This document shows positions 1 to 45,970 of a DNA stretch of 64,000 nt, one piece after another. The stretch is from Penicillus capitatus (lineage: Eukaryota > Plantae > Chlorophyta), in the NCBI GenBank assembly GCA_965649825.1, contig OZ287704.1, positions 604,301 through 668,300 of the forward strand, read 5' to 3'. The notes under the pieces were generated by a model that was not told where the DNA came from, ran no database searches, and was given only the letters and a program-made list of their open reading frames with translations. Every line of letters begins with the position of its first letter. Within the stretch, counting starts at the first letter, position 1. The position numbers and the translations under genes are program-made.

Positions 1-3000
1 CCGAAGACTCCTGCATCGGGATCAGCGTCGTCTTCTCCTTCCCTCAGTATCTGCTTCAAGTACTCGACGACGAACTTCAGAATGTGATATGCGAAAACGA
101 TAAAAACGACAAGATTCAGCAAGACACAGGCGGCGGTGAGCAATTCTCGGGTGGTGTTATCTGTAAAATCCTCTTCCTTGAGCATGGCTGCGGCCAGTGT
201 TGTCACCAGGGACGCAAACAGGGACACGACTTCGAATCTGTTCAGATCTTCGAATCTCCGACGGTAGGGCGCTGTCGCGATTTGTGCGACGATGGCGAGT
301 ATGATGAAGTGGGCCAGTCCTGTGATCGGCAGCACACTGTCGAAGAGGTGTGCGCAGAACACGAGAAAGGCAATGGACACCTTTCTCGCAACGACAGCCA
401 CCTCCCAGTATCGACGGCGTCCCAATCTGTAGCTTCGATACAGGAATCCCATCGTTTCGTAGACCCAGCCGTTCTTGTCCTTGAGGCACTCGACGGGACT
501 GCTGAGAAAGATACCGAAGAGGATCAGCAATCCGCCGTACACAGGACACGCGTATGCCAGGACGACGAAGTAAAGCAGTTTGAGATGATCGCCTTCGTAG
601 CACTTCAAACTCGTATCCACCGCCCAGTACTTCGTCGTGCTGCTGTCTCCGACAGCTGGAGAATCGTAGACGCTGATGCAGAGGCCGACGCTCAATGCCG
701 TCTTGAGCACTGACACGAAGGTGATGTACCACAGCACCATCAACGACAAGAGCCATCTCTTCTTCATGTAGTATCGCGGTCTGTTTGTTCTCAACTTCGC
801 CGATTTCATCGCCCAGAACGCGATCCAGAAGAGCAGTGTGGCTGCTGGAATGACACAGACATTGACGACGGCGGCTGATATCGTCGGATGCAGGGACGGG
901 TTATCGGAGCTTAGGCACACGACTGAGCGGCGATTTCCGTCAGACGCAAGGCCGCTGACGTACTCTACAACGCGAATGACTGACTCGCGCAGAGTGCTCG
1001 ACTCTTGATCTCACCTGCAGCTTCTGCCACGACGATCAGAGGTATTGCCCATCCCACATCCAGGGAAGAAAGCAGCACAGTCACCTGAACGTAGCTGAGT
1101 GTGATCTGAGGAAACATCGATCATCCGTCAGAGAAGCGTTCGATTGCACATACCTTGAACATTTCGACGGCCTTCCACTTCGTGAGGACCTTCTCGGATA
1201 CCGGGACTCCATCGGCCGCCCGATCCTGCTGCACTCAGTCGATAGAGCGCAGAAGATTCATTGAAACTTGCCTGTTCTTCCAGTAGTGGAGCATCGACCT
1301 GTCCGGCAGACGACGGCATTGCTCGCTGGCGGTGAAGCAATCTTTCTCTTCCGCGCGGAACGCTGAGGGTGCCGCGGATGGTGATGCCGGTCAGACCGAC
1401 CAGAAACAACACCGACAGCAAAATGAAGAAGACACTGAAGAAGCCTTCGAAGCACCTTTTGCACTTCGAGGACAAACCCGTCCCGTAGCCGTGCTCACAA
1501 GATCCACACAGTGGACCAGTGTAACCCTGCAATAAACGAACCGACGATCTCCCGAATCCGAGACCCGAAGACGATTGCTTGCCTTTGCACACTGGGATTG
1601 CGTGTAGTTCTGTATCCAGGCTTCGTCGGAGGGGCAGCTGTCCAACTCCTCAGTAAGCTTCGTCAGTTCGTCTGAACGGCCTTCGAATCTGCAGGCATGC
1701 GACGTCAGACACTTCCGCAGATGCGCCGAGCACGGTGTCTTCTGCCAGTATCCTTCGTCTGGTAGTATAATACGACCCTCGCAGTTGCCATTCATTGGAC
1801 ATGGATGGCAGACGTTCGCCGTGTGAACGAAGTTGTAGGTTGTGCTGCTGCAATCGGCGCAGAGGGAACCAGCGGACACCACTTCGCCGATCGAACAGTT
1901 TCTGACGCTCACGACAATCGATATACTCTCGACCGCCTCATCATCGAACTGTAAGGTCAGATTGTGATCTCCTGCCGGGACGAAGCCTCTGATGCCGCGG
2001 AAAGCTGCAGTTCCATGTTTCATCTCTATGGTAACGGTTCCGATCAGGAAGTCGTCAAGTGAGGACAGGCTGGCTTTCACTGGACGACGCGTTCGTGCAG
2101 GTCCCTGTCTCAGTTCATCCAATAGCTCTACCAATAAGGTAGGCATCTCCTTCCCGCTTCGATGCTCTTCGAACACATACTCTTCTCCACTCTCGGTCTT
2201 CGATTCTTTGGAACCTTTGATTGTCATTTGCGCTATTGCTGGATAGGTCCCGACGTCGGGACCGTAGTTTGTGGCTTGATTGTGCCGCCAAGACCAGCAT
2301 ATGTCGTCGATGGATTTGAGATGGAACAGGGATTGCCACTCTCTCTGTCGGTAGAAGACCAGATCAACATCTCCGGCCGCCGAGCAACGAAATCGGATGG
2401 CGTCTAAGTAACCTGTGTGAATGGCTCCTCCGGCAATCTCAGCACTGTTCCTCGAGAACGTTGTGTTTGTCACGGCAATGAATGGACAGTCGGCGCTCTC
2501 TTTGAGGCATTTCTTTCTCTTTTGGCTGCAATCGTAGAAGAGTCCCCCTGAGGAAAGTTCTCAATGGCCCGGTGTCCACGGATCGGATGCTTACCCCCAA
2601 GAGTGGCTCTGTTCAGCAGTATTCTGCTATGGACCAATTGGAGCGCGAGAACCTGATCGGCGCTGGCTTCAAAGAAGATAGCACCGCCGTTACCATTCGC
2701 TGCAGAGTTCTCTCTGAGCGTGCAATTGACACAGAGAAGCGTCGAGGATGTGCTGCCCATGATGGCACCACCATGCGAGTGCGCATCGCAACGAACAACG
2801 TCAAGGCTTTTTGCCGTGAGATCAGATTCTGTCAGCGCAATTGCTCCCCCCTTCTTCGATCTCCCATGCGTCATTCGTGAATTGCTTATGAGAATCGAAC
2901 TGTTTTGTTCTCCAGAAACGAAACCACCGGAAACCTGCGCTTCGCCTTCCGAGAAGAGTGAACCAGTGTCGTTCACCGTCGAGTCTTCGGCACATACAGA

Positions 3001-5218
3001 GCCTCCCAGATTGGCAGTATTGTTACTTGCTTTCGTGCCTGTCAACTCAAGCATTGAATCTCTTACGTGGATGAAACCACCACGCTTTGCGCTGTTGCTT
3101 GTGGCCTGCGTTTCTGCGAGACGGACTCTTGAACAAAAGGATTCGAGGAAGCCTCCCCTATCCGCGTAATTGCCAATTGCTTTTGTTCCCTTCATGTCGA
3201 GTGTCGAGAACAAAGTCATGACAAGGCCTCCGCTCAACGCAGTGTTGTTGACTGCCTTTGTCCTGGCAAACTCAACTGTGGAGTTCCTGGCCCGGATAAA
3301 TCCTCCCAGTTGAGCAGTATTGTTGATTGCCAAAGCTTGATCCAAAGAGATGGCAGATTCGATTGCATGGACGAAGCCGCCCATCCCGCCGTTCACTATT
3401 TCATATGTCTTGCTTCTTGATTTGGATGGAACCTCCTCTCTCACATCTGGGATGATCGTAAGATAAGGAACTTGGTTGTTAATTGCACGTGTCTTCACAA
3501 ACGAAAGTGTCGATCTGTCGGCAAAGATAAAGCCGCCAGCCACTTTGGCACGATTGTTATATGCCTTCGTCGATGAAAGTTTCAGATTTGAGTTCACTGC
3601 AAATATAAATCCTCCTCGATAAGAAGCACGATTGTTATATGCCTTCGTCAATGAAAGTTTCAGAGTCGAGTTCACTGCAAATATAAATCCTCCATCGCGA
3701 TAAGCTCCGTTTTCTGTGGCTTCTATCGAAGACAGCTTGAGAATTGATCGTTTTGCATGAATGCAAGGACCGTTGTCTGCACCGTTCCCATGGAAGGTAG
3801 AATGGGACAAAGTGACAGTCGAGTTTGTTGTTTGGATGACGGATTCAGAATCTTGAGGATGGTTCTTCATGAAGCGGATATTATCCATTTCGGCAGATGA
3901 TTCGATAAATACCAGGCAAGGAAGTCCGTTCTCATTGAACGACGAATTCGACATGGAGATGAATGCATCTTCAATTCGAAAGATATAACATTCGTTTCCA
4001 GCTGCTGTTAGTCTTTTGACCTTCGTATGGGATCCAGGGGCACCGAAAACAGGGCTGTAGATTGTCCCGGTCTGCCAAAGGTCATTTTGGTGACTGTGCA
4101 ATTCTCCAGTCGGTTCTTTGTTGAGAGAATGGCTCCACATGCACTACTTGGGCATACCGTGTTATGGAAATCGACGTTAAATAACTCCGACTCGGAGCAA
4201 GATGGAGAAGCCATTTGAATACCTCTCACATCCGTGCCATTTTGGAAGACGACATGGTGCAGACGCACCTGGCCAGTTATGTCTCCAGCACCACACGCTC
4301 CAACCTCGATTATTGAGTCCCGGAGCTGACATTGTTCGAATATCAGATTAGCAAACGTTACACTCTTTGTCCTGCAGGAATAGATGAAGGTGGTGAGTTT
4401 TCAGAGAATTCTTACTTCACGAGGAATATGCTGGTTCTGGAGTGCTGTGGGCATGTAAATCTCGTCTTCGTTTTCGAACGAGGAACCATTTCTCCGAAAC
4501 GGATAGGTACGTCGACGTGTGCACTCAGGGTTAGTTCCCAAGGAATGGTGACTGTCGATCTTGACTCGATGATGCAGCTTACATTGAACAGGATGATGTC
4601 GCCTCGCTGAGTGCAGTCGATCAAAGATTGCAAATCGTGATCAATACCGCTAAGGAAGGTTTCATCCACAAACCACGTTCTGCTCTCCTCTTCCAAGTAT
4701 CTGTCGATGGCATCTTCTGTTAAGTAACACTGAATAGCAAAAGGACCAGAACCCAAGAAGCCTGTCTGTCTGTATTGAAGAGAAGTTAAAACAATTCGTG
4801 CCTATGGGATATTTACTCATAAGAAGGAATGTCTGACAGCAGTGAAAATCTCCCCTACAACAACAAAGAAATGAAACTGCCACACTCTTTGGCCCAGACA
4901 GATTAACCGTTGGCTCTGAGTGTCCATATTCGGCATACTGGACTGAGATCCCGGTGGGTCGAAAACAGGTCTGTACGTCGAATATGACAAGGCGTGGAAG
5001 CTGACCTGTTTAATAACAAAACATGAAGGAAAGAAACCAAGGCAGTGGCAGAATACGAGCAATAGTCGACGAACCCGTTAGACCAAAATGACCTCGAAGA
5101 ACCAAGCTCGAACAGTCTGGGTAGCGCGCCAACGCCTCCAGACACATGCATAGCAGCAGAAGAAGCCTTCGCAGCGTTAAGCAACCAACATTTTTTGCAT
5201 TCGTTTGCGAAACATCAT
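1..5218 (-). CDS. Pmp-like right-handed beta-helix + Cys-rich + multi-pass TM receptor-like protein, copy A (multi-exon; 3' end runs ~100 nt off the left edge; start codon uncertain)
   Basis: Exons in ORFs 4662-4883, 4412-4756, 4008-4268, 2470-4140, 1391-2473, 1128-1592 plus the TM region 1-950. Repeated GG(A/F)I and xxNxA motifs. Cys-rich block CADCSSTTY..CHPCP..C.G..LPDEGYW..C..GYTGPLCGSC. TM part has YWEV..RK and P.....LN..E motifs typical of TRP-like (PF06011-type) domains. GT-AG and GC-AG introns join the frames. Confidence 0.8.
3551..3706. repeat. 78-bp tandem duplication (2 copies) encoding one extra 26-aa beta-helix rung
   Basis: CGATTGTTATATGCCTTCGTC starts at 3551 and again at 3629. 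The protein shows GGFIFAVNSxLKLSxTKAYNNRA twice, whereas copy B has it once. Confidence 0.9.
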
Positions 5219-5562
5219 CTCAAATAAGGCCGCGGGATGCGAAAACGTAATCACTTGATCGGTTTTCGTGACAAGATGGAGCGACAAGACCCAACACGCA
5301 CTGTCTTACTACCACTGAATCCTCCCCTTGTCTTCATCTTTTTGTCCTCCTTGCGTTAGAGAGCATTTCTCTCTGTCGCTGTTCCAAACGTCCTCTTCTC
5401 GAATAATCGGCTCATGACAACAGCAACGTCGTCAACGAGTTCTGCAAGTGGTCCCCGACAGGAAGGCAATGATGAGGTGGAGCATTTTTTCAGGTGAATA
5501 GCAGGTGAACAAACTCTTCTTTCACGAACATTGTGTCTTCGAAAGCCATCTGCGTCTGGAAT

Positions 5563-7493
5563 TCAGATTGCCGCTCCATGTACAGCATGTGACGAAAACC
5601 CAAGAAATGCGACAACGCATCTCTCTTCGATCTGAAGTAGAGACGACGATGGCCGATTCTTAGTCATTCTTGTCTTCGCGTCGCGTCTTTGCGTTTCGTT
5701 TCCGCTGTGCGCGCTAGTCCGACTTTCCACGGCCTGCGGACGACACCTTCTTGCTAGCTTCGCCGTTTGACTTATTCTCCACAGCAGAACAGTCGTGTGC
5801 ATATGACCTGATCACTTCTGCCTGAACACGGATGCAGCAGTTCTCCGCGATCTCCTTGGGATCCTTGTGCGCCGACGAGAGAATCTGCTTCCTGTCCACC
5901 AGATACTGATCCTGAGACTTCGCTGTTGCTTCGCGCTGATCCAGATCTTGGCTACGCCTGCAGATGCATTCAAACTGTTCGATCACAGCTTGAGGCAATG
6001 GACAAGAAGTACTGTGTGGATTCCTGCATCAGGATGTCGTGTGTCCCATCAAGCTCCGCTTTTCTGCTTGGGCGCGCGAGGTGACAGGAAAGTGGTGCGA
6101 GAGAGAGACTACTTGTTGTCCGGTGCTGTCTGTTTTCCTTGGCTGCACGCTCTCTTGTTTTGCATCCCTGTCGACTAATAGAGCTTGTGCGTTGCCATCT
6201 GGAGCTTTGTCCGTTCCGAAAAAGCATCTTCATTGACGATCATATCTTCCGCCAGCTCTAGGAAGAAGTTATGCCTGCATTCCAGTTTGCGCACTTCCAT
6301 TGCCGACAGCTCTCCGTGTGAAGAATCCCCACGCGAGTAAATCGATCTGTTCTTCACGCTGAGTGAGAGACATCCCTGCACACATGACCCTCAATCGAAT
6401 CCTCCAGATAACGAGATCAGATTGATTGTGTCTCATCAAGCCTCCTCTTCTGTACATCCAAGAAAATTAGACGTCGCCGGATGCAGTCGTTGCGTGTCTT
6501 TACTTTATCTCGACAAGCATTGGCGAATCCTGCCTTCTTGCTTTCAAACTCCTCTTGCTCTTCTTTGAGTTCCTTTTCTCCATAGACAGACATAGCAGAG
6601 ATTCTCTGGATACGTGATCGAATTCCAACTGACTCTCAACTAAGATCTAGATTCTTTTGGGCGAGAGCCTCCCCGGTAAAGTTCACCGCGGCCTCTATAT
6701 CCAGCAACCCTTGATTCCGGACTTCAAGCTCATTCTTGAAGCGGAGAACACGTAGTCAATCGCGTCTGTGAACTCCGATTGCTTTTTTAGCCTGTTAACA
6801 TGTGCTCGGGGTTCTTCGTGCATGATATTCTTATAGATGGTGTAAGTGTCATCGAACGCTTCAGTGCGTGATGAGTGCTTACTGCGGTGCGCGGAACAAT
6901 GCTCGCTCCTAAATCGTTTATTTCCAGAAACACGATATCTGCTGCGAGGAACGAACACACAGCCGAGTGTTCATCCATTCGTGCGCGGTGTCGAAGTGAC
7001 GGGACGTTTGCCTCAGTCATGTCTCTTGTCGCGGTAACCTCAATGTGGGGACATGAGATCTCGTCTCCGTCTCAGAATGCTGAAACCCTCCAAAGCGAGC
7101 ATTCAGACGCCGTGCTCTTCGTTCCAAAAGTTCTGCATTTAACTGATGAAGATCCTGTGCAAAGAAAAATTGAGTTGTGATCAGATTTAAGAGTGTGCGA
7201 TATCTTCAATGATCAACGCTGTCTTCTTCTACTTTTTGTAAAGCTGCAGAATCTTATCTGTGCGGTCTGCGAACTGACAGCGGCGTTTTCTGAACGAAGA
7301 GGACTGTGAAGAAATTGTACATTTCTACACGGGTTTCCGTGTTCCACATGGCGAGTTTATGTTCACCACGACACGACTGACGTTTTGTGACCTTTGCAGT
7401 TTCACCTGTACTAGTCGTCGGGACAAGATTCGGAAAATAATCTATTCCCCTCTTCTTGCAGACTGCTCTGCCGATTCCCGTTTCTTTTTCCAT
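5563..7493 (-). CDS. Hypothetical multi-exon helical protein, copy A (boundaries approximate)
   Basis: Clean exon 7039-7154 (TTTCTTTGCACAG acceptor, GTTACC donor) reads DLHQLNAELLERRARRLNARFGG. Three of four A/B substitutions checked in this frame are synonymous. Further minus-strand frames at 7254-7493, 6695-6958, 6175-6381, 5970-6233 and 5714-5998. Confidence 0.55.
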
Positions 7494-7692
7494 ATCAAAT
7501 AGTAAACCGTACTTAAGGAGGACTACTTTCTTTGTCTCCTATTGTGACGTCGAACGGAAAGTGATACGTTTCTAGGATGACACGATTGGCACTCGGAGAC
7601 GTCTCGCGTGTCCTTTGAGTCAGTCAGTACGGTCGACGCGATCCAACACAGGTGAGGAAGCAGAATGCGTGAATGAAATTAATGCTGATCGT

Positions 7693-10367
7693 TTAATCTG
7701 GCCCCAGTTTGTCCAGAAGAGTGACCTTGATGATGAGGCTTAACCAACCGTTCTTCACAAAACCGAGTTTTTCGTCCTCCACTTCGAGACAACTCAGCGA
7801 CCAATTGAGATGTTGACCGCGCTCTGGAGAAATCACCAGCTCCTCTACATGAGATCTGTCAGTGGACCGAGGTAGCCGGTGGCGTATTACCTTGAACACT
7901 TTCGTCGTTTGGTTGTGTGTGCCTGACAACGCGGAGTTCGACAAGGATACGTATCCTCTCTTTTGACCAGTTGCCAACGGTCAGTTTCGTACTCTTCGTT
8001 TTCGAATCGGTATCGGGAGACCGAAGTTCCAACGCTCTGCTCAATGCAAACAGCTCAAGAGCTAAAAGTCGAAGAGATAAGGGCGAGTAGGTAATGCTTA
8101 CATGGGGATGTCATTGATCCAGAATTTCTCTGGAATCATGCAACCTGGGTTCAACTGTGCGTATCTCACTCTCCACTAGAACACAACTTCAGTCCCTGGA
8201 AGAGATGAGGAGGCCAATCATGCTGTGCAATTGGCAGTCTTTCCGTCAATGGCATAACAAAAGTTTTCGTTGTCTTCAAGACGAAGCCTCAGATTCAAGC
8301 GGACAAGGAAGAAATCGTGTTTCAGGAACCCAGAGGACGAGTCCATGAGGTCCTTGACGGTGGTGCACAAAGTAGACTTCCCGATGAAGCTTTCAGGGTG
8401 TATAATGAAACGGTAATCTTTAGCAGTCAAATCGGCACGTCAATGCTCGAAGAATGTGCAAAAACGATTGCTTACTGCAGGTCTTGTTCTTTGTTGCGTC
8501 TTTGAAGTTAACGACCTTCGTTGTGGAATGAACCCAAGCCTCCGGCCCCTGCGTAGCACCAATAGAGAGTCCGATGTCTGCATTTTCTTCTCTCTTGATG
8601 TCGAACTCCCTGGTTGGCAGCATGACAGTGTGGGATGTGACATGACAGAATCGCCTACCATGTGCGGTCGTTCATCACAAAAGACTTAGAGAACAGTCCC
8701 TTCGGATTCTCCAACAGAGACCGGTGCACACAGCACTGGGAAAGACTACCAGTTTGCGATGAGAAGGGAAGCAGGCTGAATTACCTCGTAGTAGGCGTAC
8801 CACTTAGACTTGGCGAGCAGATAGGCATGCTCAACGCCGTTATCGACACCAGTACCCTCTGCATTTCAAGCACATCTCAGAAAGAGCGGAGCAGAAAGCA
8901 GACATCGACCTTCGATCTCTACGCTCATCCTGTTGTCGATCTCCAGAGAGCTTCCTTCTTTCTCTTCCACCTCTCTTCTTTGGCGAAGTATCTCCAGCGC
9001 GAACTGTCTGCAGCTCATGAAAGAGATCCTTGCGCACAGCGTGATCCAACCATCTTGCACGAAGCCACTTGTCTTGTCTTCAAGCTCGCTTTTCTTTGCG
9101 AGGTGGATCCAGTTTGTCTGGGATCCCGGGCCCCGCAAATAGAGCATCTCTGCGAGCAAAACAGGACTCATCAGAGCGAGAGAGAGGCAGAAAATGGTAT
9201 CACCAAGAGAAGAGCTGGCTCCAGTGACTTCGCGGTTCAGGATAGAGCACAACAAGCGTCCGTAGAGGGGACTGCCTCCCGTGTGTTGCATCGACAGATC
9301 CAGGTCTGTCGAATGAGAATTCGATCCATGCGGTCGGATTTCTAGGCTCCTGTGTGACCAACCGTCAAACAAGAGTAACAATTGCGAGTAACGAGTATCA
9401 TACAGTGTGCAGCCGCCTGTGTCAAAGTCGTCTGTCGTTAGAGTAAATGGGCTCATCTGTTTGAGGTGTCTCAGCTTCCACTGACGTACACATAACCTGT
9501 TCCGAAAAGAGAGGAAACAAGAGAAGAGGCAACCTCGCACACAGCGTCCCCTCCCTGGAAGGAGAGCTTCCAAAGCTCGCTCTCCTGACATCGGATTCTC
9601 AGTTCCAGGCGCAGCGTGAAGTAGTCGCCGTTAAGGAAACGTGTGCATCGATTCTTGACGTCATCGATCCTCGCCATGTCACGAATTCCGTGCCGACAAT
9701 CGAACGGACGGAAGACACAAGAGACATCTAGACAAGGAATAGATACAGTTCAGGAACTTGGAGACGTCAGTAAATCCTCTTTTGGCAACTTTCGCCGACG
9801 TTTCGCTTCTCGTCCTCCCAGTTGACGAGAGTCAGAGAGAAGTAAGCCTTGACCAGTTTTCCATTCCGAGAACAGAGACAAGCTCTGAGGTTCCCTGTCG
9901 TCAAGTTCTCGACTTCGATGCACCTTCATCACAGAAGACGAACACGAGTACTCTGAGATGTCCACCGTGTCCTCCCTTACCAATGATGACCATTGACTTC
10001 GAAGTTACACGAAAACATTCTCGTGTTCTTCTTCTCCAAAAAAGAGTGATGCACACGCCACTAGCAGAATGCATCACGTAACGATTTCAACGAGTCTGGC
10101 GACCTTACTTCGTAAGTCGCGTACCACGCATGCTTCTTCAACGTATAAGCGTGAGGGATGCCTTTCGTAACTTGGTTTCCCTCTGAGGGCGACTTCAGTT
10201 CACGCGCCGTGCAAACGTGGCACACCTTCAGCGTGTATCGTCGTTCCATCCGATAGTTTTTTAATGTTATGCGCTCCGAGGTTAGCGTCGCATTTATAGC
10301 CGCACGGCTGAACGCTGAGCCCGTCGTTGACGCACGGCAACGGCCATTCTTGTTTGTCTCGCTCCAT
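7693..10367 (-). CDS. Tandem MATH/TRAF-domain protein (4 MATH-like domains), copy A, multi-exon
   Basis: Four MATH-type C-terminal strands: RIDDVKNRCTRFLNGDYFTLRLEL, SELEDKTSGFVQDGWITLCARI, VKDLMDSSSGFLKHDFFLVRL and LEVEDEKLGFVKNGWLSLIIKV. N-terminal WKLRHLKQMSPFTLTTDDFDTGGC/SLEIRPHG matches the MATH pattern W.I..F...S..F..GG..W.L.I.P.G. Introns 43-55 nt. Confidence 0.75.
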
Positions 10368-11770
10368 TCTGCTAAATAATAAACAGTGTGGCGGCGTTCT
10401 CAGATGACACGGAAAAAGGAAGTCGAAAGAAAGCTTAATACAGCGCGACTCTTTGACTTCCCCTTTTATGGAGCTGGAGTGGGCATCCATTTATCACGTC
10501 TGTGTCTCTTGAGCTGTAATCCGACACGGAAAAATGGCGACACGTAGAGTCTAATGGCAGCTGTGCGCAATGCGCGGTCTTCTAGATGTGTCTCACTGCG
10601 CAACGAAGGCGCGAGATTAGGACGTGGCAGTTGGCCTTGAGCAAATCTTGACGAACGACAGTAAAATTAGCGCTATCCGTGTCTATAGCATTGAAGAGAT
10701 CGGCCTTCACGTCGGAACCGCTTTTTCTGGATCACGGCAGCCGTCGACTGTTCTTTAAAACAGAGATCCATCTGCATTCTGCGCCTTTGATCAGAGCTGA
10801 GAGAATAGGAGATGTACTTTTCAGCTATGTTGGTTCGCTGAATGCATGCGGAGTCTTGTGTTTCCTGCATGCTTTGGGTGAGAGGTATGGCATTCACTGC
10901 GTTGGACAGACCACGATTGACTCTACAGATGGTGTCCGACAATTGCTCACCTCTTCCATCTTGCAGATGAAGCATTTGAAGATTGAACTGTTACAAATCA
11001 TTAGAAGAGGTTCTATGACATATCAGATGACATGCACATTCAACAATGAGTTACTGCTTTCTTCCACGAATAATTTCGAAGCGAAGCAGAGCCGAGCTTT
11101 TATGTGCCGAATAGTTCATGCAGAGATTCCGTGGTGTTGCCTGCGACTCGTGAGGGGAGGCAGAACATCCGATCGACAAGACAGCTCGAACTCTGCCGCT
11201 GCCGGGACCGCTGTTTTAATGATCCTTTGTGCGGGATTCTCTGACTTCGACAGATAGACCATGCCATGCAGTGGGGTGAAATGGGGCTGGGAAGGTTTGC
11301 CTAGTCATCTGTAGAAGTGGGTTTGAATCCAGAACCGCAGAACGAAGACTCGACTAACCAAACGACTGCGTCACCACATAATGCAGAAAAACGCAATATC
11401 CCTTAGCGACATAAAGACAAGCGTACATCAAGACTCGAAACAATCATTGCGCGGTACATGAGCATCCAAACAATCGTCATCAGGGCCACAATGGATCGGC
11501 TCTGTTTTGGTAGACAGCAATGTAAATCGAGAGGAAGAGAATAACCCGTGTGCACTTTGCCTCGTCGAGATCAGAGTACTGAAAGCCAAGACGAAATATG
11601 ACACAACCGAAAAGCTGCAGCTGATCATTTGTGCAACTTACTTATCGCATCAGTCCACGCACTGATCATCTCTGCCATTTATGCAAGAACTGCATAGAAG
11701 GCTGAAGGTTAGCTTATCACAAAAGGCTATGACTGCAGTTTTCTACTACACTGTGAGGTAAGCCATACGC

Positions 11771-13250: not shown

Positions 13251-14363
13251 TCAAACTTGTGAAGAAGGATGTACTCGGCGATCCTTAGGAAGCTCTAGAT
13301 AGTAAAGCATGAATGAGATCAAGATGAAAACGCCGACCCAAACTGGGACGACGATGGCGCAGGCCAATGTCCCGCCCCAAATAGCGACTCCTATCAACCA
13401 CGGCAGACAAAACAGCGGAGCAAGAAGCAAAAACCCGAAAAACAGGCTAAAGTGCTGTCGGCAAATTTCTAACAAACAAACAATAATAACAGGAACAAAT
13501 GTTTCTGCACTCACCACAAGCATCAACCATATCACGTTTACTTTTAAACATCCGGCATCTTCATTAACGCGATTGGATTGAACAAACCAGGAAAAGAAAC
13601 CTGTCAGTATTAAGAAATAGAGTCCGAAGCCTCCTCCAACACCAACACCAATCTCAATGCTGCACCATCCACCGTAATGAGCAGCGCAGCGAATCATGGA
13701 CCTCTCTCGGCATTCCCAGTGCTTGCAGAAAAGCTCTCCTCTTGTAAAACACTCGCAAACTGATGACGCGATCTTGTAACTGGATGAGATGTTGCCCTTC
13801 CAGCGATAGCAATACTCTCCTGTGACGTCCTCCTCCAGACATTTGTAGTCCCCTTTCTTGGGATCGATTCTGGAGCTGTCCTCTCTACACGACCACTCTG
13901 AACAGTATCGCCGATTCGGAACTCGCGAGTGGCATGCACACGTCAAGGTGTTGTTGCCAACACTCGCACACCTAGTGGATTCTCGGCTGGCTGTGCAGTC
14001 GTCACGTTCGTCGACATCGGTCGTCGTGCACTCCCAGTGGTCGCAACAAGTTAGGTCCGTTGCGCCAGTACAAGTGCAGTTGTCGTATTCCCCTCTCTTT
14101 CCATTCCCCTCCTGCATCGACCAGTGGCGACAGCGACTGCTTGCGTCTTCGAGACAGTCGTAAATTTTCGCTTTCGTTTTGCTGGCGACTCGCCACAGAC
14201 CGCCTCTGTAAACACCGGACTCTGTGTAATACCCGGCCACACGCTTCATGCGATTCCAGGACTGCAGACCTTCGTTCAAATCGTGAGCTGTCTCATTGGA
14301 CTCTCCCAGTGCCGCAACAACGAAACAAGCCGCAGTACAGAAGTAGTATACAGATGCAATCAT
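13251..14363 (-). CDS. Signal-peptide Cys/Trp-repeat membrane protein, copy A (intronless, intact)
   Basis: 370-aa ORF: hydrophobic N-terminus, about five C-x-C-x(6-9)-C-x2-W-x-C-type modules, then about four hydrophobic segments. Paralogue at 48568-49611. Confidence 0.8.
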   Translation of the reverse strand: MIASVYYFCTAACFVVAALGESNETAHDLNEGLQSWNRMKRVAGYYTESGVYRGGLWRVASKTKAKIYDCLEDASSRCRHWSMQEGNGKRGEYDNCTCTGATDLTCCDHWECTTTDVDERDDCTASRESTRCASVGNNTLTCACHSRVPNRRYCSEWSCREDSSRIDPKKGDYKCLEEDVTGEYCYRWKGNISSSYKIASSVCECFTRGELFCKHWECRERSMIRCAAHYGGWCSIEIGVGVGGGFGLYFLILTGFFSWFVQSNRVNEDAGCLKVNVIWLMLVVSAETFVPVIIVCLLEICRQHFSLFFGFLLLAPLFCLPWLIGVAIWGGTLACAIVVPVWVGVFILISFMLYYLELPKDRRVHPSSQV

Positions 14364-27320: not shown

Positions 27321-29693
27321 GCGATCGGACAAATCGACGATGCCAAAACGTGCGCGGATTGAACATCGCGAGATCGATCTTTGCCATCGGGCGCTTCCGA
27401 GTTGGCCGCGGTCAGGCAAGATAGAGATCGATCTCAGCAAATCTTGGTTGTGGCATCAGTAACCCTGATACGTGATACTGAAGTTTCAATCTTAGCTTGT
27501 TATTGCAGTGCAGTCCGATCTGCGATTGAACGGATCGACGGTGCAAGAGTTGCACATGTGTGATAAACCGGTCGTTGCCGTCTGTCAGATTGTTTGGTGT
27601 GCATCTGACAATATCCTTGGCCCCATTACTAAATATACTTGTTCCTTTTTTGCATTCGTGAAATCGCCGTGCCAAATCTGTCAAGTACAACTGGATATCA
27701 TGACATGACTATAGTTCCGAATGACGAACGACTTATCTGCAAGGCGGACCCTCTCTCATTGCCGATTCGTAAAATCATGTAAGGCAATCACGACGATCGC
27801 AACGCCGATCTGTAGTTTCCGATCACACGGCACGCGGATCATCGATCAGTGTTCGGTTTGATTCTTGATGATTGTGTCGATGCTCGGATCAGCATCTCAG
27901 GATTGCGGCAGACAAGCCCATCCTGCTGTGCCCCCATCCGATGAAGGCTTCGTCCAGTTCGTTGACTTACTGAGCTCCACTGTTCCTCTGACATGACAGC
28001 AGAGATGTGTTTGTAAGCGCACGCGTCGTTTCCACGAGTCGATGGCGTATTCGAGACGCCTGACACAGCTCGGTGGGTTTCTCTGTTGATCGATCGATGC
28101 GTAGGCGGCCCATCTGGATGGATCTCGTTCGAGTGCGAAAGATGCCACTCGGTTTTGGCAATCGGTTAGTTAAAAAGTCGCCAAACAGCAAAACAATGTC
28201 AACATCTAATTATTGACTTCCACTCTGTTTCGAGAATCTTTTTGCATCCTAGTTTTGCACGACAGTCACCAGATGAATGCCGTCTTCTCTGCTGCTCGTT
28301 GCTAACCTCAAAGTGCAAAACGACACATCTAGTGCCTTCATTGGACCAGGCCATCTGTTTTTCGCGATAAAGCATCCTCTTGTGTGGTCTATCGCTCGAG
28401 CAGTCAGTCAGGGACACGCACTTTGAGCAGCACATGCACATTCCGGCATCAAACCGGCTCCACAGTGACCTCGACGACTGACAATGCTACCGGCGCACGG
28501 AATGATAAAAGAGCCTAGAAACGCATCGGCAGTTTTTCAATTTGTGTCATATCTCGTCTACTCTTCCGGCACTCCGAACCTCGACAAAGCATAGTGCACA
28601 CAAGCAGTCATTTTCTCTCCTCTCGATTGAGAATGCCGTCCGGCAAAACAAACCAATCCGTTTGTCGTCTAATGAATATCATTCGTGCCCGTGTGCCTCG
28701 CAACGATTCCTTCTGAGTTAAGATGGATGCTTGTCTTTTTTTCACGAAAGGATGATACGTTTTTCTGCATTGTGTGGCGGTTTCGTTGTTTTGATTGTTG
28801 TGTTTTCTCTGCCGTTCTTAATCCAAATCCATTCTCCACGGATTACTGAACAAGCCTCCTTCCTCGGTTCACCTTACTTCGCTGTGTGGCCTATTTTCTT
28901 GTACTCAGTGACATCCACAAAGAGGATCATTAAAACGGCAGTCATGCTGGAGTTTCATCTGTTATGTCTATCAGGTGCTCTATCTCTCTGCACGAGTTCT
29001 GCGATATACCAGATGACATGCGCATTCGACAGTACCCCGTTTTGCCACATATGGTCTGGAAGCAAAGCAGCAGCAAAGCTTCTGTGCAACAAAAAGTGCA
29101 CGCAGAGATTCTGGTTTTGTTTTCAGCGACTGCCTGGCGTTTATCATTTCCGCGCAAGAGCTTGTTTATAGCCTATTCAGTCGTCGTTACCTTGCCTTAA
29201 TCAGTATAACCTCTTCCATTGCGTACACGGCTCAATCTTCAAAACACCATCTGTAAGATCAGTAGTGGTCCGTCCAAAGCTATGGTATGCGCCTCACTCA
29301 ACGGACATCCAGGAAGGAACCACTGGACTCTTCATGCATTCACCGAGCTGATACAGCTCAAAACTGTATCTCCTATTCTTTCATTTCTGACTGAATGACG
29401 GCGAATGGATCTCCGTTATTGTGGATCGGTCAACAGCTGCCTTGACGCAACAAAGAGGTTCATGACGTGAAAACCGATCCATTTAATGTTTTTGATACGA
29501 ACAGCACCAAATTTAGTGCCTTTCGGCAGGCTTACGTCCAGGCCCGTCTTTTTAGTCCCAACTTTACGTCTTTGTCGCGCAGCGAGGCACATCTAAACGA
29601 CCGCATTCGGCACCACTGCCATTAGGCTCTATGTGCCGTCATTCTCCGTGTCGGTTTATATCTCAAGAGACACTGGGATTTGTTTTTCGCAGA

Positions 29694-32374
29694 ATGGAGG
29701 GAGAGAAACGACCATTGTTGTGGTCATGCGTCAACAGCAGGCTTAGTACTCGGCAGTATGGCTACGAACGCGACGCTCAGCTCGAAAAGAATAGCATCGA
29801 AGAACCGTTAGACGGCACAAAAATACACGTCGAAGGTGTGCCGTCAGAGTTCGTGGCATATAAACCGAAGTCGCGTTCAGGAGGAAACCGAATTACAAAA
29901 GGCATTCCCCAAGCTTACACGTTAAAGAAGCATGCATGGTACACGGTTTACGAAGTGAGCTTGCCCAGTGTGTCAGGAATACTATTGCGCGCAATCCCTA
30001 GTGGCACGTGCATCACTCTTTCCTGACGAAAAAGGACATGAAGATGTTCTCGGATAACTTCGAAGTCAATGGCCACCATTGGTGAGAGAGGACGCGGTGG
30101 ACATTACAGAATACTCATTATCGTGTTCTGTAAGTGAAGGTGCATCGAAGTTAGGAGCACGCGGATGGGAAACCTCAGATCTTGTCTCTGTTCGCGAAAC
30201 AGAGAATTGGTGAAGACGCATTTTTCGTTGACTCTTATAAACTGGGAGGACGAAAAACACAACGTCTGCGAAAGTTGCCAGAAGAGAATGCACTAAAGTC
30301 TTCGATCTTCTGAAATGGCCCTATCTGTTCTTCTAGATGTCACATGTGTCTTCCGCTCGTCCGATCGTCGGCAGGGAATTCGTGACATGGCGAGAATCGA
30401 TGACGTCAAGAATCGCTGCACACGTTTCCTTAACGGCGACTACTTCACGCTGCGCCTGGAACTGAGAATCAGGTGTCCGGAGAGCGAGCTTTGGAAGCTC
30501 TCCTTCCAGGAAGGGGACGCTGTGTGCGAGGTTGCCTCTTCTCTTGTTTTCTCTCTTTGGCATATGTTTTGTGTACCACAGTGGAAGTTGAGACACCTCA
30601 AACAGATGAGTCCATTCACTCTGACGACAGATGTCTTCGACACGGGCGGCTGCACACTGTAAGAACCGCGGCGCTCGCAGTTGTTCCTCTTGTTTGACGG
30701 TCGGCCACGTAGGAGCTTAACAGTCCGAATGCCTGGATCGACTTCTGATTCGACAGACCTGGATCTGTCGATGCGACACATGGGAGGCAGTCCCCTCTAC
30801 GGACGTTTGGCGTGCTCCATCCTGAACCGCGAATCCACTGGAGCCAGCTCTTCATCCGGTGGCAACTTCTCATCTGTTCTCTCGCTCTGATGGGCCCAGT
30901 CTTGTGGGCAGAGATGCTCTATCTACGTGGCCAGGGATCCCAGACGGACTGGATCCACCTCGCAAAGGAGAGCGAGCTTGAAGACAAGTCAAGCGGTTTC
31001 GTGCAGGATGGCTGGATCACGCTGTGCGCAAGGATCTCTTTCATGAGCTGCAGACAGTTCGCGCTGGAGATGCTTCGCCAAAGAAGAGAGGTGGAAGAGA
31101 AAGAAGGAAGCTCTCTGGCCATCGACGACGCGCTAAGTGTGCAGATCGAAAGTCGATGTCTGCTTTCTGCTCCGCTCTTTCTGAGATGTGCTTGAAATGC
31201 AGAGGGTACTGGTGTCGATAACGGCGTTGAGCATGCCTATCTGCTGGCCGAGTACAACTGGTACGCCTACTACGAGGTAATTCAGCCTGCTTCCCTTCTC
31301 ATTACAAACTGGTAGTCTTCCCCAGTGCTGTGTGCACCGGTCTCTGTTGGAGAATCCGAAGGGACTGTTCTCTAAATCTTTCGTGTTGAACGACCACGCA
31401 TGGTAGGTAATTGTGGATTCTGTCAGGTCACATCTAGCACTGTCATGCTGTCAACCAGGGAGTTCAACATCAAAAGGGAAGAAAATGGAGACGTCAGACT
31501 CTTCGTCAGTGCCACACAAGGGCCAGAAGCTTGGGTTCATTCCACAGCGAAGGTCGTCGACACTGAAGACGCAACGAAAAACAAGATCAGAAGTAAGAAA
31601 TCGTTTATGCGTGTTCTGCGAACCTTGGCACGCCGATGTGACTGATAAAGTTTTTTGTTTAAAAGCACATTCTGGAGAATCTACTGAGAAGTTTGTATTA
31701 TACACGACCGTGAATGACCTCATCGAGTCGTCCTCTGGGTTCCTGAAACAGGATTTCTTCCTTTTTCGCTTGGATCTGAGGCTTCGTCTTGAAGACAACG
31801 AAAATTTCAAGTGCTTCAAGGATGGGAACACCGTACATTGCATAGTACGCTCAGTTCCATCTTCTCACGGTACTGAAGCTGTGTTCTAGTGGAAAGTGAG
31901 ACATGCACAAATGAACCCAGGTTGCATGATTCCAGAGAAATTCTGGATCAATGACACCCCGATGTAAGCACATATCTACTCGCCCTTATCTCTTCGACTT
32001 TCATCTCTTGAGCCGTTTTGCGTTGAGCAGAGCATTGGCACTTCGTTCGCCTGATTCTGCTTCGGGAACGAAGGCAACGAAACTGTCTGTTACCAACTGG
32101 TCGAAAGAAAAGATTCGTGTCCTTGTCAAGCTCCGTGTGGTCAAGCACACAAAACCGAACGGCGAAGGAGTTCTTGGTAACACGGCACTGCCTCCCACCG
32201 TCTACTGATGTATTTTCGGTAGAGGAGTTGGCGATTTCTCCAAGGTGCTATCAACGCCTTAACTGGTCGCTGAGCTGGCTCCAAGTGGAGGACGAAACTC
32301 TTAGTTTTGTGAAGAACGGTTGGTTAAGCCTCATCATCAAAATCACTCTTCTGGAGAAATTGGGGCCAGATTAA
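29694..32374 (+). CDS. Tandem MATH/TRAF-domain protein, copy B, multi-exon
   Basis: Same four MATH-like motifs and the same intron positions as copy A. No lesion found in the exons I traced. Confidence 0.72.
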
Positions 32375-32574
32375 ACGATCAGCATTAATTTCATTCACGC
32401 ATTCTGCTTCCTCACCTGTGTTGGATCGCGTCGACCGTACTGACTGACTCAAAGGACACGCGAGACGTCTCCGGGTACCAATCGTGTCATCCTAGAAACG
32501 TATCGCTTTCCGTTCGACGTCACAATAGGAGACAAAGAAAGTAGTCCTCCTTAAGTACGGTTTACTATTTGATA

Positions 32575-34517
32575 TGGAAAAAGAAACGGGAATCGGCAGA
32601 GCAGTCTGCAAGAAGCAGGGGAATAGATTATTTTCCAGATCTTGTCCCAACGACTAGTACAGGTGAAATTGCAAAGGTGACAAAATGTCAGTCGTGTCGT
32701 GGTGAACACAAACTCGCCATGTGGAACACGGAAACCCGTGTAGAAATGTGCAATCTTTTCACAGTCCTCTTCGTTCAGGAAACGCCGCTGTCCGTGTGTG
32801 GACCGCACAGAGAAGATGCAAGAGCTTTACAAAAGTAGAAGAAGACAACGTTGATCATTGACGATATCGCACACGCATAAATCTGATCACAACTCAATGT
32901 TTCTTTGCACATGATCTTCATCAGTTAAACGCAGAACTTTTGAAACGAAGAGCAAGGCGTCTGAATGCTCGCTTTGGAGGCTTTCAGCATTCTGAGACGG
33001 AGACGAGATCTCATGTCCCCACATTGAGGTTACCACGACAAGAGACATGACTGAGGCAAACGTCCCGTCACTTACGACACCGCGCACGAATGGATGAACA
33101 CTCGGCTGTGTGTTCGTTCCTCGCAGCAGATATCTTGTCTCTGGAAATAAACGATTTAGGAGCGAGCATTGTTCCGCGCACCGCAGTAAGCACTCATCAC
33201 GCAGTGAAGAGTTCGATGACACTTACACCATCTACAAGAATATCATGCACGAAGAACCCCGCGCACATGTTAGCAGACTAAAAAAGCAATCGGAGTTCAC
33301 AGACGCGATTGACTACGTGTTCTCCGCTTTAAGAGTGAACTTGAAGCCTGGAATCAAGGGTTGCTGGAGAGAGAAGCCGCGGTGAACTTGACCGGGGAGT
33401 CTCTCGCCCAAAAGAATCTAGATCTTAGTCGAGAGTCAGTTGGAATTCGATCACGTATCCAGAGAAACTCTGCTATGTCTTGTTTATGGAGAAAAGGAAC
33501 TCAAAGAAGAGCAAGAGGAGTTTGAAAGCAAGAAGGCAGGATTCGCCAATGCTTATCGAGATAAAGTAAAGGCACGCAACGACTGCATCCGGCGACGTCT
33601 AATTTTCTTGGATGTACAGAAGATGAGGGTTGATGAGACACAATCAATCTGATCTCGTTATCTGGAAGATTCGATTCAAGGGTCATGTGTGCAGGGATGT
33701 CTCTTAATCAGCGTGAAGAACAGATCGATTTACTCGAGTGGGGATTTCTTCACACGGAGAGCCATCGGCAATGGAAGTGCGCAAACTGGAATGCATGCAT
33801 AACTTTTTCCTAGAGCTGGCGGAAGATATGATCGACAATGAAGATGCTTTTTCGGAACGGACAAAGCTCCAGATGGCAACGTACAAGCTCTATTAGTCGA
33901 CAGGGATGCAAAACAAGAGAGCGTGCAGCCAAGGAGGGCAGACAGCACTGGACAACAAGTAGTCTCTCTCTCTCTCGCACCACTTTCCTGTCACCTCGCG
34001 CGCCCAAGCAGAGAAGCGGAGCTTGATGGGACACACGACATCCTGATGCAGGAATCCTCACAGTACTTCTTGTCCATTGCCTCAAGCTGTGATCGAACAG
34101 TTTGAATGCATCTGCAGGCGTGGCCAAGATCTGGATCAGCGCGAAGCAACAGCGAAGTCTCAGGATCAGTATCTGGTGGACAGGAAGCAGATTCTCTCGT
34201 CGGCACACACGGATCCCAAGGAGATCGCGGAGAACTGCTGCATCCGTGTTCAGGCAGAAGTGATCAGGTCATATGCGCACGACTGTTCTGCTGTGGCGAA
34301 AAGTCAAACGGCGAAGTTAGCAAGAAGGTGTCGTCCGCAGGCCGTGGAAGGTCGGACTAGCGCCCGTAGCGGAAACGAATCGCAACGACGCGACGCGAAG
34401 ACAAGAATGGCTAAGAATCGGCCATCGTCGTCTCTACTTCTGATCGAAGAGAGATGCGTTGTCGCATTTCTTAGATTTTCGTCACATGCTGTAGCTGTAC
34501 ATGGAGCGGCAATCTGA
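32575..34517 (+). pseudogene. Hypothetical helical protein, copy B, probably disrupted
   Basis: Extra C at 32616 relative to copy A, and the acceptor AG is changed to AT at 32911-32912. Confidence 0.5.
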
Positions 34518-34857
34518 ATTCCAGACGCAGATGGCTTTCGAAGACACAATGTTTGTGAAAGAAGAGTTTGTTCACCTGCTATTCACCTGAAAAAATGCTC
34601 CACCTCATCATTGCCTTCCTGTCGGGGACCACTTGCAGAACTCGTTGACGACGTTGCTGTTGTCATGAGCCGATTATTCGAGAAGAGGACGTTTGGAACA
34701 GCGACAGAGAAATGCTCTCTAACGCAAGGAGGACAAAAAGATGAAGACAAGGGGAGGATTCAGTGGTAGTAAGACAGTGCGTGTTGGGTCTTGTCGCTCC
34801 ATCTTGTCACGAAAACCGCAAGTGATTACGTTTTCGCATCCCGCGGCCTTATTTGAG

Positions 34858-37800
34858 ATGATGTTTTCGCAAATGAACGCAAAAAATGTTGGTTGCTTAA
34901 CGCTGCGAAGGCTTCTTCTGCTGCTATGCATGTGTCTGGAGGCGTTGGCGCGCTACCCAGACTGTTCGAGCTTGGTTCTTCGAGGTCATTTTGGTCTAAC
35001 GGGTTCGCCGACTATTGCTCGTATTCTGCCACTGCCTTGGTTTCTTTCCTTCATGTTTTGTTATTAAACAGGTCAGCTTCCACGCCTTGTCATATTCGAC
35101 GTACAGACCTGTTTTCGACCCACCGGGATCTCAGTCCAGTATGCCGAATATGGACACTCAGAGCCAACGGTTAATCTGTCTGGGCCAAAGAGTGTGGCAG
35201 TTTCATTTCTTTGTTGTTGTAGGGGAGATTTTCACTGCTGTCAGACATTCCTTCTTATGAGTAAATATCCCATAGGCACGAATTGTTTTAACTTCTTTTC
35301 GATACAGACAGACAGCCTCCTTGGGTTCTGATCGTTCTGATGTTCAGTGTTACTTGACAGAAGATGCTATCGACAGATACTTGGACGCGGACAGCAGAAC
35401 GTGGTTTGTGGATGAAACCTTCCTTAGCGGTATTGATCACGATTTGCAATCTCTGATCAACTGCACTGAGAGAGGCGACATCATCCTGTTCAATGTAAGC
35501 TGCATCATCGAGTCAAGATCGACAGTCACCATTCCTTGGGAACTAACCCTGAGTGCACACGTCGACGTACCTATCCGTTTCGGAGAAATGGTTCCTCGTT
35601 CGAAAACGAAGACGAGATTTACATGCCCACAGCACTCCAGAACTAGCATATTCCTCGTGAAGTAAGAATTCTCTGAAAACTCACCACCTTCATCTATTCC
35701 TGCAGGACAAAGAGTGTAACGTTTGCTAATCTGATATTCGAACAATGTCAGCTCCGGGACTCAATAATCGAGGTTGGAGCGTGTGGTACTGGAGACATAA
35801 CTGGCCAGGTGCGTCTGCACCATGTCGTCTTCCAAAATGGCACGGATGTGAGAGGTCTTCAAATGGCTTCTCCATCTTGCTCCGAGTCGGAGTTATTTAA
35901 CGTCGATTTCCATAACACGGTATGCCCAAGTAGTGCATGTGGAGCCATTCTCTCAACAAAGAAACGACTGGAGAATTGCACAGTCACCGGAACGACACCA
36001 AACACCAAGAAGACTTCTGAAGCACTGTTTTCGGCTCCCGCTGGATCCCGTACAGTCGTAAAAGGACTAACAGCAACCAAGAACAGATTTCGCATCTTTC
36101 GAATTGAAGACGGATTCGTGTCCATGTCAGATTCATCGTTTAATGACAACGCAGATACTTGCCTGGTATTGAACGAATCATCTGTCGAGATGGACAATTG
36201 CCGCTTCAGCCACAACCGTCTTCATTTTCCTGAAGCCGTCATCCAAGCAACAAACTCGAGTGTCAGTTTATCCCGTTCTATTTTCCATAGCAACGTTGCA
36301 GAAGAAGGTGCCTGCATTCAGGCAGAAGGATCAACTCTCAAGCTGTCTTCGATAGAGGCAAGCGACAATTATGTCTTTAGACGAGGAGGATTCATATCTG
36401 CCGTGAACTCAACTCTGGAACTTTCGTCGACGAAGGCATACAACAATTCTGCTACAGAGGCTGGCGGTTTCATCTTCGCCAACAAATCGATGCTATCGTT
36501 TGTGAAGACACGTGCAATTAACAACAGGATTTCTGTGTACCTTATGCATGCGAGAACGGATGATCTGTCTAGATCAAGGGGCAAGGCATATGAAATAATA
36601 AACGGCGGGATGGGCGGCTTCGTCTATGCGACCGAGTCTGTCATCTCTTTGGATCGAACGTGGGCAATCAACAACGACGCTGTTCTGAGAGGATTTATCA
36701 TGGCCAAGAACTCCACACTTGACTTGACCAGGACAAAGGCAGTCAACAACAATGCCAGGAGAGGAGGCTTTGTCATGACGTTGTTCTCGACACTCGACAT
36801 GAAGGGAACAAAAGCAGTTGGCAATTACGCAGAATGGGGAGGCTTCCTCGAATCCTTCTGTTCAAGAGTCAGTCTCGCAGAAACGCAGGCCACAAGCAAC
36901 AGCGCACAGCTCGGAGGTTTCATCCACGTAAGAGATTCAATGCTTGAGTTGACAGGCACGAAAGCAAGTAACAATACTGCCAATCTGGGAGGCTCTGTAT
37001 GTGCCGAAGACTCGACGGTGAACGACACTGGTTCACTCTTCTCGGATGGCGAAGCGCAGGTTTCCGGTGGTTTCGTTTCTGGAGAACAAAACAGTTCGAT
37101 TCTCATAAGCAATTCACGAATGACGCATGGGAGATCGAAGAAGGGGGAGCAATTGCGCTGACAGATTCCGAATTCGTGGCACAAAGTCTTTACATAGATC
37201 GTTGCGAGGCGCGCTCCCATGGTGGTGCCATCATGGGCAGCACATCCTCGACGCTTCTCTGTGTCAATTGCACGCTCAGAGAGAACTCTGCAGCGAATGG
37301 TAACGGCGGTGCTATCTTCTTTGAAGCCAGCGCCGATCAGGTTCTCGCCCTCCAATTGGTCCATGGCAGAATACTGATGAACAGAGCCACTTTTGGAGGT
37401 AAGCATCCGATCCGTGGACACCGGGCCATTGAGAACTTTCCTCAGGGGGACTCTTCTACGATTGCAGCCAAAAGAGGCAGAAATGCCTCAAAGAGAGCGC
37501 CGACTGTCCATTCATTGCCGTGACAAACACAACGTTCTCGAGGAACAGTGCTGAGATTGCCGGGGGAGCCATTCACGCAAGCTACTTAGACGCCATCCGA
37601 TTTCGCTGCTCGGCGGCCGGAGATGCCGATCTGGTCTTCTACCGACAGAGAGAGTGGCAATCCCTGTTCCATCTCAAATCTGTCAAAGACATGTGCGCGT
37701 CTTGGCGGCACAATCAAGCCACAAACTACGGTCCCAACGTCGGGACCTATCCAGCAATAGCGCAAATGACAATCAAAGGCTCCAAAGAATCGAAGACCGA

Positions 37801-45965: not shown

Positions 45966-45970
45966 GGTGG

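Follow-up and report, generated by a model that had tools for sequence, protein, structure and literature searches.

A probable gene-converting, decaying cluster of PMP-repeat beta-helix membrane protein genes in the green alga Penicillus capitatus

The window analyzed here, 64,000 nucleotides (nt) of Penicillus capitatus DNA (contig OZ287704.1, positions 604,301 to 668,300 of the forward strand), carries two inverted copies, A and B, of a gene for a membrane protein with a PMP-repeat beta-helix. These copies probably belong to a gene-converting, decaying paralogue cluster, in which divergence peaks over the ectodomain of the encoded protein. This reading was built from direct observations on gene anatomy, protein fold, mosaicism of the copies, the contrast in synonymous divergence (dS) between helix and flanks, an enrichment of differences at one turn of the helix (T3) and the presence of disabling lesions. 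An earlier note on the window had proposed instead a duplicated pair of receptors, whose turns are hypervariable in the manner of complementarity-determining regions (CDRs).

Results

Organization of the gene copies

Copy A occupies positions 1 to 4756 on the minus strand, from exon 2 to the last exon, and its exon model is open in the sister-species locus L005. About 30 codons of its 3’ end run off the window start, and the upstream signal-peptide exon or exons (up to ~5184) are not placed by the model. Copy B, an inverted paralogue at 35321 to 40088 on the plus strand, is complete to the stop codon. The region 1–5400 (minus strand) is repeated at 34680–39991 in inverted orientation; positions 1..3618 match 39991..36382 with 95.7% identity, and 3625..10389 match 36453..29670. 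Both copies are part of an inverted segmental duplication with an A-side arm at 1–11600 and a B-side arm at ~28400–39991, which exhibit patchy identity of 55–100%. Between A and B lies a spacer of ~29 kb with unique genes.

The earlier note’s “pair” turned out to be too small a number: at least five copies are present in the P. capitatus genome, namely A, A’, B, D and E. E represents an allele of A, as it is 99.7% identical, has one rung fewer and shows just 2 net 1-nt indels to A over ~7.7 kb. A, B and A’ are located on one 593-kb contig (ENA ERZ25074695). In the sister species, the helix gene is syntenic and single copy. The sister-species sample comprises two near-identical loci, C (L001) and C’ (L005), located on a 368-kb and a 1.6-Mb contig; in C, a deletion spanning exons 5–6 and part of exon 4 has removed 579 coding nt, among them those for the first transmembrane (TM) helix. 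Upstream of the gene in E (contig ctg335664, L004 1277–7728), a 6.4-kb retroelement (RVT_1, rve) is found at the equivalent of window position ~6483–6487, which is an insertion polymorphism between haplotypes.

A divergent core within homogenized flanks

A and B are 99–100% identical across introns, stalk and TM exons. The near-identity outside the helix that had been claimed before thus stands for introns and TM exons, but further mosaic patches interrupt it elsewhere, e.g. A 2880–2790 with 87%. The divergent core maps to 3190–4100 of A (minus strand) and to 35990–36800 of B (plus strand); here, the nt identity of A to B and D is 63–85% (63–89% between A and B for A 4078–3282) and the ratio of non-synonymous to synonymous divergence (dN/dS, omega) is 0.5–1.0. 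Along copy A, the dS between A and B changes from 0.00 (4268–4100) to 0.33–0.39 in the core (4100–3330), and drops to 0.16 (3330–3060) and 0.05 (3060–2598), while the proportion of synonymous differences (pS) is 0.03 in exons 4–8. Indeed, the N-terminal half of the helix is diffusely diverged, as had been noticed before: its proportion of non-synonymous differences (pN) equals pS (both 0.27), and dN/dS for A–B is ~1.0 at 4100–3750. The same segment separates A, B and D from one another, with core dS values of 0.28–0.44 that approach those measured against the sister-species copy in the same windows (0.44–0.89). As dS in the core is as high as dN, the contrast to the flanks reflects age and gene conversion rather than accelerated protein evolution. 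Between species, omega is 0.5–0.6 in the N-terminal helix segment versus 0.26 for the rest.

The phylogenetic signal switches block-wise along the copies, as is characteristic for gene conversion. Three groupings that are incompatible with each other are favored by 93, 26 and 26 of the 145 informative 2:2 sites among A, A’, B and D, and the sites form 22 runs, compared to 77 expected (10,000 shuffles, minimum 59). In the core, 75 consecutive informative sites join A and A’ against B and D, and outside of it 20 runs are counted where 47 are expected (p < 1e-4). Also in keeping with conversion, the homogenization of silent sites and introns is confined to the flanks and spares the peak. Some 2 kb of upstream non-coding DNA (7600–5400) are 94–99% identical among A, B and D, albeit unalignable to the sister species; further unconverted patches reside in the neighboring block at 7880–10400. 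In D and A’, A-like stretches visibly alternate with B-like ones, e.g. with residues DSEFVAQ versus LDVVRCDAHSH. The block upstream of the helix gene occurs in three copies (window 7549–11262, 29670–32518 and 53967–57679); in D it is 92–100% A-like, yet the helix core of D is nearer to B, pointing to large-scale mosaicism between loci. Taken together, the sequence comparisons argue that interlocus gene conversion drives concerted evolution of the copies, with divergence peaking over the N-terminal helix half. Peaks of this kind have been described as a sign of selection that resists conversion (PMC3924837).

Gene model and protein architecture

The gene model comprises 7 exons and was checked on copy C’ (locus L005, sample ERZ26696514), whose spliced coding sequence is intact with 1473 codons and no stop. 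In copy A, the exons are located at 4756–4416, 4371–2595, 2547–1583, 1526–1272, 1228–1154, 1105–1015 and 964–1 (minus strand). The introns measure 43–56 nt and have GT/GC-AG splice sites. Two GC-AG introns, at 1527–1582 and 1229–1271 (minus strand), possess GCAAG donors, which are kept in all copies of the genome; of their sister-species counterparts, one has GCGAGC and the other GTAAGA. The encoded protein consists, in this order, of an N-terminal right-handed beta-helix, an immunoglobulin (Ig)-like and Cys-rich stalk with the modules CxIGE...C..C and GYxGxLCxxC, one TM helix, a loop and a conserved multi-pass TM domain.

Exon 3 of copy A (2595–4371, minus strand) encodes an N-terminal cap and ~17 rungs of PMP type with 25–26 amino acids (aa) each. 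The earlier note had proposed a beta-helix, and AlphaFold2 (AF2) supports one of the right-handed type: the model of the intact allelic open reading frame (ORF), with a pLDDT of 85.3 and a pTM of 0.84, contains beta structure only, with three strands repeated every 25 residues. Foldseek matched this three-sheet parallel beta-helix with Ag43, pertactin, Vag8, phage tailspikes and PL6 lyases. At least 9 regular rungs follow the PMP-repeat motif [LVI]x[LF]xxTxAxxNxAxxGG[FL][IV], with a spacing that agrees with published data (PMC11166332). The rung register is 1 L, 3 L, 6 T, 8 A, 11 N, 13 A, 16–17 GG, 18 F and 19 I, and the free residues in the turn between Asn and GG are at registers 12, 14 and 15. 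In the nomenclature of the Pmp proteins, FxxN marks the junction from PB3 to T3, while GGA closes T3 (PMC11166332). The Asn-to-GG turn therefore corresponds to T3, which is known to vary in the coils of Pmps (PMC11166332).

Pfam scans of the window ORFs returned no significant family: for PF02415, window and allelic ORFs scored 16–17 bits (E = 0.007–0.014; cut-off 20.6) or did not match. Therefore, classification relied on remote homologues and fold. HMMER detected 3881 relatives at E <= 1e-3, many of them carrying PF02415 (Chlam_PMP) or PF13229, and the nearest named proteins are from the green algae Caulerpa lentillifera and Cymbomonas. The last exon of copy A (1–964, minus strand) encodes the multi-pass TM domain, which is homologous to the TM part of Caulerpa P0199 (E = 1e-19) and 58% identical even to paralogues with helices of merely 36–38% identity. 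PF06011 (TRP-like) gave no match for the TM exon of the window, L004 or L005; the homologous Caulerpa protein scored 27.0 bits, just below the cut-off of 28.5. The AF2 model of the domain, based on a 6-row alignment, was too poor for fold comparison (pLDDT 46.6). We regard a TRP-like identity of the TM domain as a lead.

Two irregularities distinguish the helix of copy A. An omega-loop of ~30 aa is inserted in T3 of one rung (3382–3474, minus strand). It is very variable, with indels between copies, is disordered in the AF2 model (pLDDT <50 at residues 227–242) and is comparable to the T3 side loops of chlamydial Pmps (PMC11166332). A 49-nt candidate intron (GTGAG...ATAG) in the long T3 loop was dismissed, as its removal would generate a stop, and as A, B and C keep the reading frame through the loop. 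Secondly, an extra 78-nt rung (3586–3663, minus strand), a tandem duplicate of 3508–3585, is present in A and A’, but absent from E, B, D and C.

Enrichment of differences at the T3 turns and tests for selection

The T3 codons (registers 12–15) of rungs 3–6 are located in copy A at 3307–3318, 3232–3243, 3157–3168 and 3082–3093, and T3 of rung 2 at 3538–3552 (all minus strand). The earlier note had quoted five pairs of turns that differ between A and B (TAQL-GG/DAVL-RG, TALS/NARR, YADR/YAEW, SAKR/SAQL and NNRAKVAGG/NNSATEAGG) and, as a DNA example, ACTGCGTTGAGC versus AATGCCAGGAGA; all of these are correct, including the exchange of GG by RG at an otherwise invariant Gly in rung 3 of B. T3 enrichment is strongest in the transition zone formed by rungs 3–6 (A 3052–3351, minus strand; B 36643–36942, plus strand). 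Here, 9 of the 12 T3 codons differ between A and B, versus 13 of 88 other codons (Fisher p = 3.8e-5). T3 contributes 41% of the A–B amino-acid differences, compared to 15% expected from a profile of 903 rungs of 174 relatives (p = 0.003); its share is 38% for B–D, 29% for A–D and 20–27% versus C’. Hence, the disproportionate load of substitutions in this repeated turn is real, but it is partial: 13 of the 22 differences are found outside of the turn, at other outward-facing registers (1–7, 9, 20, 22). Family-wide, entropy across the 903 rungs is highest at registers 14/15 and 22/23, and T3 is one of the two least constrained spots in the rungs of this family.

Could these differences result from diversifying selection on a ligand-binding face? 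In this scenario, a modification of the earlier model along the lines of Teshima and Innan, T3 (perhaps together with the T1 side) would be a recognition surface, and conversion tracts erasing its differences would be rejected. Pairwise NG86 estimates of dN/dS for T3 are 1.3–2.6 among A, B and D, on 2.5–3.5 synonymous differences, versus 0.33–0.5 for other rung codons. Multi-step replacements recur independently at the same T3 codons in separate lineages (AGG AGA to TTT AGA to TTG AGC; CGT/ACT/TCT/AGT), and the T3 patches of B carry adjacent synonymous changes, resembling small islands of older sequence. The near-identical internal rungs of three relatives (P0033, P0036 and P0003) likewise differ mainly at T3 (23 non-synonymous (N) : 2 synonymous (S) changes) and PB1/T1 (26 : 5), as compared to 40 : 33 in the rest (p = 6e-4 and p = 7e-3, respectively). 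Moreover, the peak sits on the ectodomain within >7 kb of homogenized DNA, as selection resisting conversion would have it (PMC3924837).

However, a T3 ratio above neutrality was not obtained. When minimal changes are counted across A, A’, B, D and C’, T3 has 23 N : 6 S (omega-like 1.1) versus 40 : 41 elsewhere (0.33); the difference between the two is significant (p = 0.008), whereas an excess of T3 over neutrality is not (p = 0.34). T3 of the relatives is not significantly above the neutral ratio either, and the pooled T3 counts are 46 N : 8 S versus a neutral expectation of ~43 : 11. Among the youngest variants (A, E, A’), 24 codons of exon 3 are variable, 4 of them in regular rungs and 0 at T3. 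Further arguments against this scenario are that every copy in the genome is disrupted (see below), that T3 and T1 are the least constrained registers family-wide, and that other unconverted patches exist at 7880–10400. We therefore consider diversifying selection possible, albeit unproven and on balance unlikely. The label “CDR-like hypervariable” is not established for turns with an omega of ~1.1 that are generically variable throughout the family, and a diversifying receptor family is not borne out by disrupted copies whose youngest variants lack T3 changes. The stacking of the turns on one face, to which the earlier note had pointed, applies to any register of a beta-helix and is thus uninformative. 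The bias towards the turn fits the constraint that PMP-type rungs generally show, modestly exceeding it; T3 is thus a site of least constraint that is possibly selected.

In two of the relatives, P0033 (L007 3001–4881) and P0036 (L008 3001–4917), arrays of 8–10 nearly identical 26-aa rungs are found. These rungs vary almost solely in three residues before GG and in four after GGF[IM], which gives them a TALE-like look, and higher-order (multi-rung) duplication is evident.

Lesions in all copies

All five copies from the P. capitatus genome are disrupted by a frameshift or stop. In copy A, a run of four C at 4037–4040 (minus strand), which is C5 in E, B, D and C/C’, causes a frameshift that is shared with A’; the latter carries another 1-nt deletion in addition. 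Copy B has a frameshift in a G5 run at 37143–37147 (plus strand; G6 in all others) and a premature TAG in the TM-domain exon at 39582–39584 (plus strand; TAC in all others). These lesions of A and B had escaped the earlier reader. E carries two stops (GAA to TAA and TGG to TGA), and D a 1-nt deletion in the loop. By sequence, A and B would thus be pseudogenes in a cluster of at least five copies. An intact acceptor locus was not present among database proteins with >60% identity. The lesions are few and copy-specific, and pN/pS among copies is 0.22–0.52 in exons 4–8. This constraint implies that the lesions are recent relative to divergence or that conversion imports selected sequence.

Reassignment of stop codons was considered for the TAA at a Glu codon and the TGA at a Trp codon in E but discarded: none of TAA, TAG and TGA occurs in frame among the 1473 codons of the sister copy, further stops are missing from the other copies, and the frameshifts would not be explained. 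Likewise, an apparent TGA in B at A-coordinate 3702 and “frameshifts” of 37 and 34 nt in E were recognized as alignment artefacts of the 78-nt tandem rung; the B ORF is open there.

Neutral decay of redundant pseudogene copies, with the T3 excess being noise or mutational clustering, would be in line with the disruption of all five copies, with the loss of the invariant Gly in B and with a dN/dS of ~1.0 for A–B at 4100–3750. This explanation appears improbable, as omega is 0.33 for rung codons outside T3 and pN/pS remains low in exons 4–8, as the core is free of stops despite ~27% divergence (pS = pN = 0.27), and as few, copy-specific lesions place pseudogenization late relative to divergence. 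Finally, mis-joined haplotypes or strains of a single locus with indels as consensus errors are very improbable: although the contigs are metagenomic (coverages 20x, 31x and 44x) and the lesions in A and B coincide with homopolymer runs, A, B and A’ share one 593-kb contig with A and B inverted around ~29 kb of unique genes, the stops in B and E are substitutions not explicable as homopolymer errors, and the few 1-nt indels between A and E make assembly error unlikely as a general explanation.

Other features of the window

A trigger-factor gene is located at 21368–22903 (minus strand; PF05697 N-domain, followed by a PPIase-like ORF), for which only same-lineage metagenome homologues were found. 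It suggests a plastid-bearing host. Together with the origin of the closest named relatives, Caulerpa and Cymbomonas, it renders the algal host assumed in the earlier note plausible. At 13251–14363 (minus strand), a Cys-rich ORF of 370 aa with C-terminal TM helices is present, and a diverged paralogue at ~48560–49289. This ORF adjoins the helix gene in the sister species too, where it is found on both sides of C’ in L005. Downstream of copy B (43735–45975), there is a 2.2-kb GC-rich (71%) degenerate tandem-repeat array with strong strand skew, composed of units of 15, 30 and 62 nt built on GCCGGCTGTC. Arrays of this type are also found downstream of the copies in L003 and L006; the array may encode an Ala/Gly/Pro-rich low-complexity protein on the minus strand. 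At 25343–26024, there are two short tandem arrays, whose units of 57 nt and 49 nt match by 96–97%. An Rfam scan of the window yielded no match.

Discussion

We propose that the gene was originally present at one locus only, a state retained in the sister species, and that a block of 15–20 kb was duplicated into at least four loci (A, A’, B and D), with E as an allele of A. Recurrent interlocus gene conversion would then have homogenized most of this block, with its introns and 2 kb of non-coding DNA upstream, while the N-terminal half of the helix would have escaped and kept a near species-level divergence. At the 3’ edge of the peak (rungs 3–6), differences would have been mostly removed, those left being enriched in the three free T3 residues (N-x-A-x-x-GG), which presumably face the solvent and would evolve about neutrally (omega ~1). 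With disabling mutations in all copies of the genome, the cluster would now be decaying or redundant. The core may have escaped conversion through selection keeping the paralogues different, or through passive divergence of the fastest-evolving segment beyond the tolerance of recombination.

Several points weigh against this interpretation. It is somewhat improbable that a large conversion tract would by chance spare just the helix core in each of the three lineages, which leaves room for selection. The pN/pS in exons 4–8 implies recent constraint or the input of sequence from a functional copy that was not found. The 1-nt deletions in A, A’ and D may be consensus errors, unlike the stop substitutions in B and E.

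Even if only the supported part of our interpretation holds, the locus provides a clean, textbook-style case of concerted evolution in an uncultured alga, in which divergence peaks on the ectodomain of a surface protein. It also calls for caution in interpreting “identical flanks, different center”, which mostly reflects gene conversion and age, not faster evolution. In addition, the data reveal a large eukaryotic family, with >3800 relatives detected, in which a PMP-type beta-helix is linked to a conserved multi-pass TM domain. As a more speculative idea, which we deem improbable, the PMP-type beta-helix and the TRP-like TM domain would constitute a diversifiable recognition module with its code in T3 and T1-side residues, selection would hold the paralogue cores apart despite conversion, and the disrupted copies would serve as a reservoir of cassettes that conversion could bring into functional genes. 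Repeat codes of the LRR or TALE type offer an analogy for specificity written in 2–3 free T3 residues per rung. If the T3 turns are selected contacts, this would be a new algal recognition system on a repeat scaffold, with a simple, readable position code.

How does the cluster compare with known systems? Silent-cassette systems (VSG, msp2, vls) combine one expression site with truncated donors, whereas the algal copies are full-length genes with point lesions. Clusters of major histocompatibility complex (MHC), plant R (leucine-rich repeat, LRR) and immunoglobulin V genes have in common with the algal locus a paralogue cluster with pseudogenes, conversion mosaics and variation on solvent-exposed repeats. 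However, an omega >1 was not demonstrated here, an intact acceptor was not found, and there is no link to immunity or self-recognition. Divergence peaks under gene conversion have been described for exon 5 of the red/green opsins and by Teshima and Innan in 2008 (reviewed in PMC3924837). There as here, paralogues are homogenized including introns, and a local peak resides on the functionally discriminating part of the protein; but the algal copies are disrupted, their peak is ~900 bp wide, and neutral escape is possible as well.

At the protein level, chlamydial Pmps (PF02415), Ag43 and pertactin share coils of ~25 aa, an Asn (FxxN-like) at the PB3/T3 junction and GG-x-[IV] closing T3. Chlamydial Pmp and autotransporter passengers also have conserved core-facing residues and form multigene families, and in chlamydial Pmps variability in sequence and length is likewise focused in T3 (omega-loops) and T1 (PMC11166332). 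In contrast to the Pmps, the algal gene is eukaryotic with introns, its product has a Cys-rich stalk and a helical multi-pass TM domain instead of a C-terminal 12-stranded beta-barrel translocator, rung position 8 is Ala rather than the Phe of FxxN, and the window proteins stay below the PF02415 cut-off (16–17 versus 20.6 bits). Caulerpa lentillifera EP00210_P007403 (g7075.t1) and Cymbomonas KAK3283965.1 are uncharacterized PMP-repeat proteins, with an identity to the algal protein of the window of just 24–29%. Nevertheless, the Caulerpa protein has the full architecture in common with the algal gene product described here, i.e. a signal peptide, a PMP beta-helix, CxIGE/epidermal growth factor (EGF)-like Cys-rich modules and the TM domain, in which the motifs YWAxDTxxKCxEGxH and YRxY...WEV are shared.

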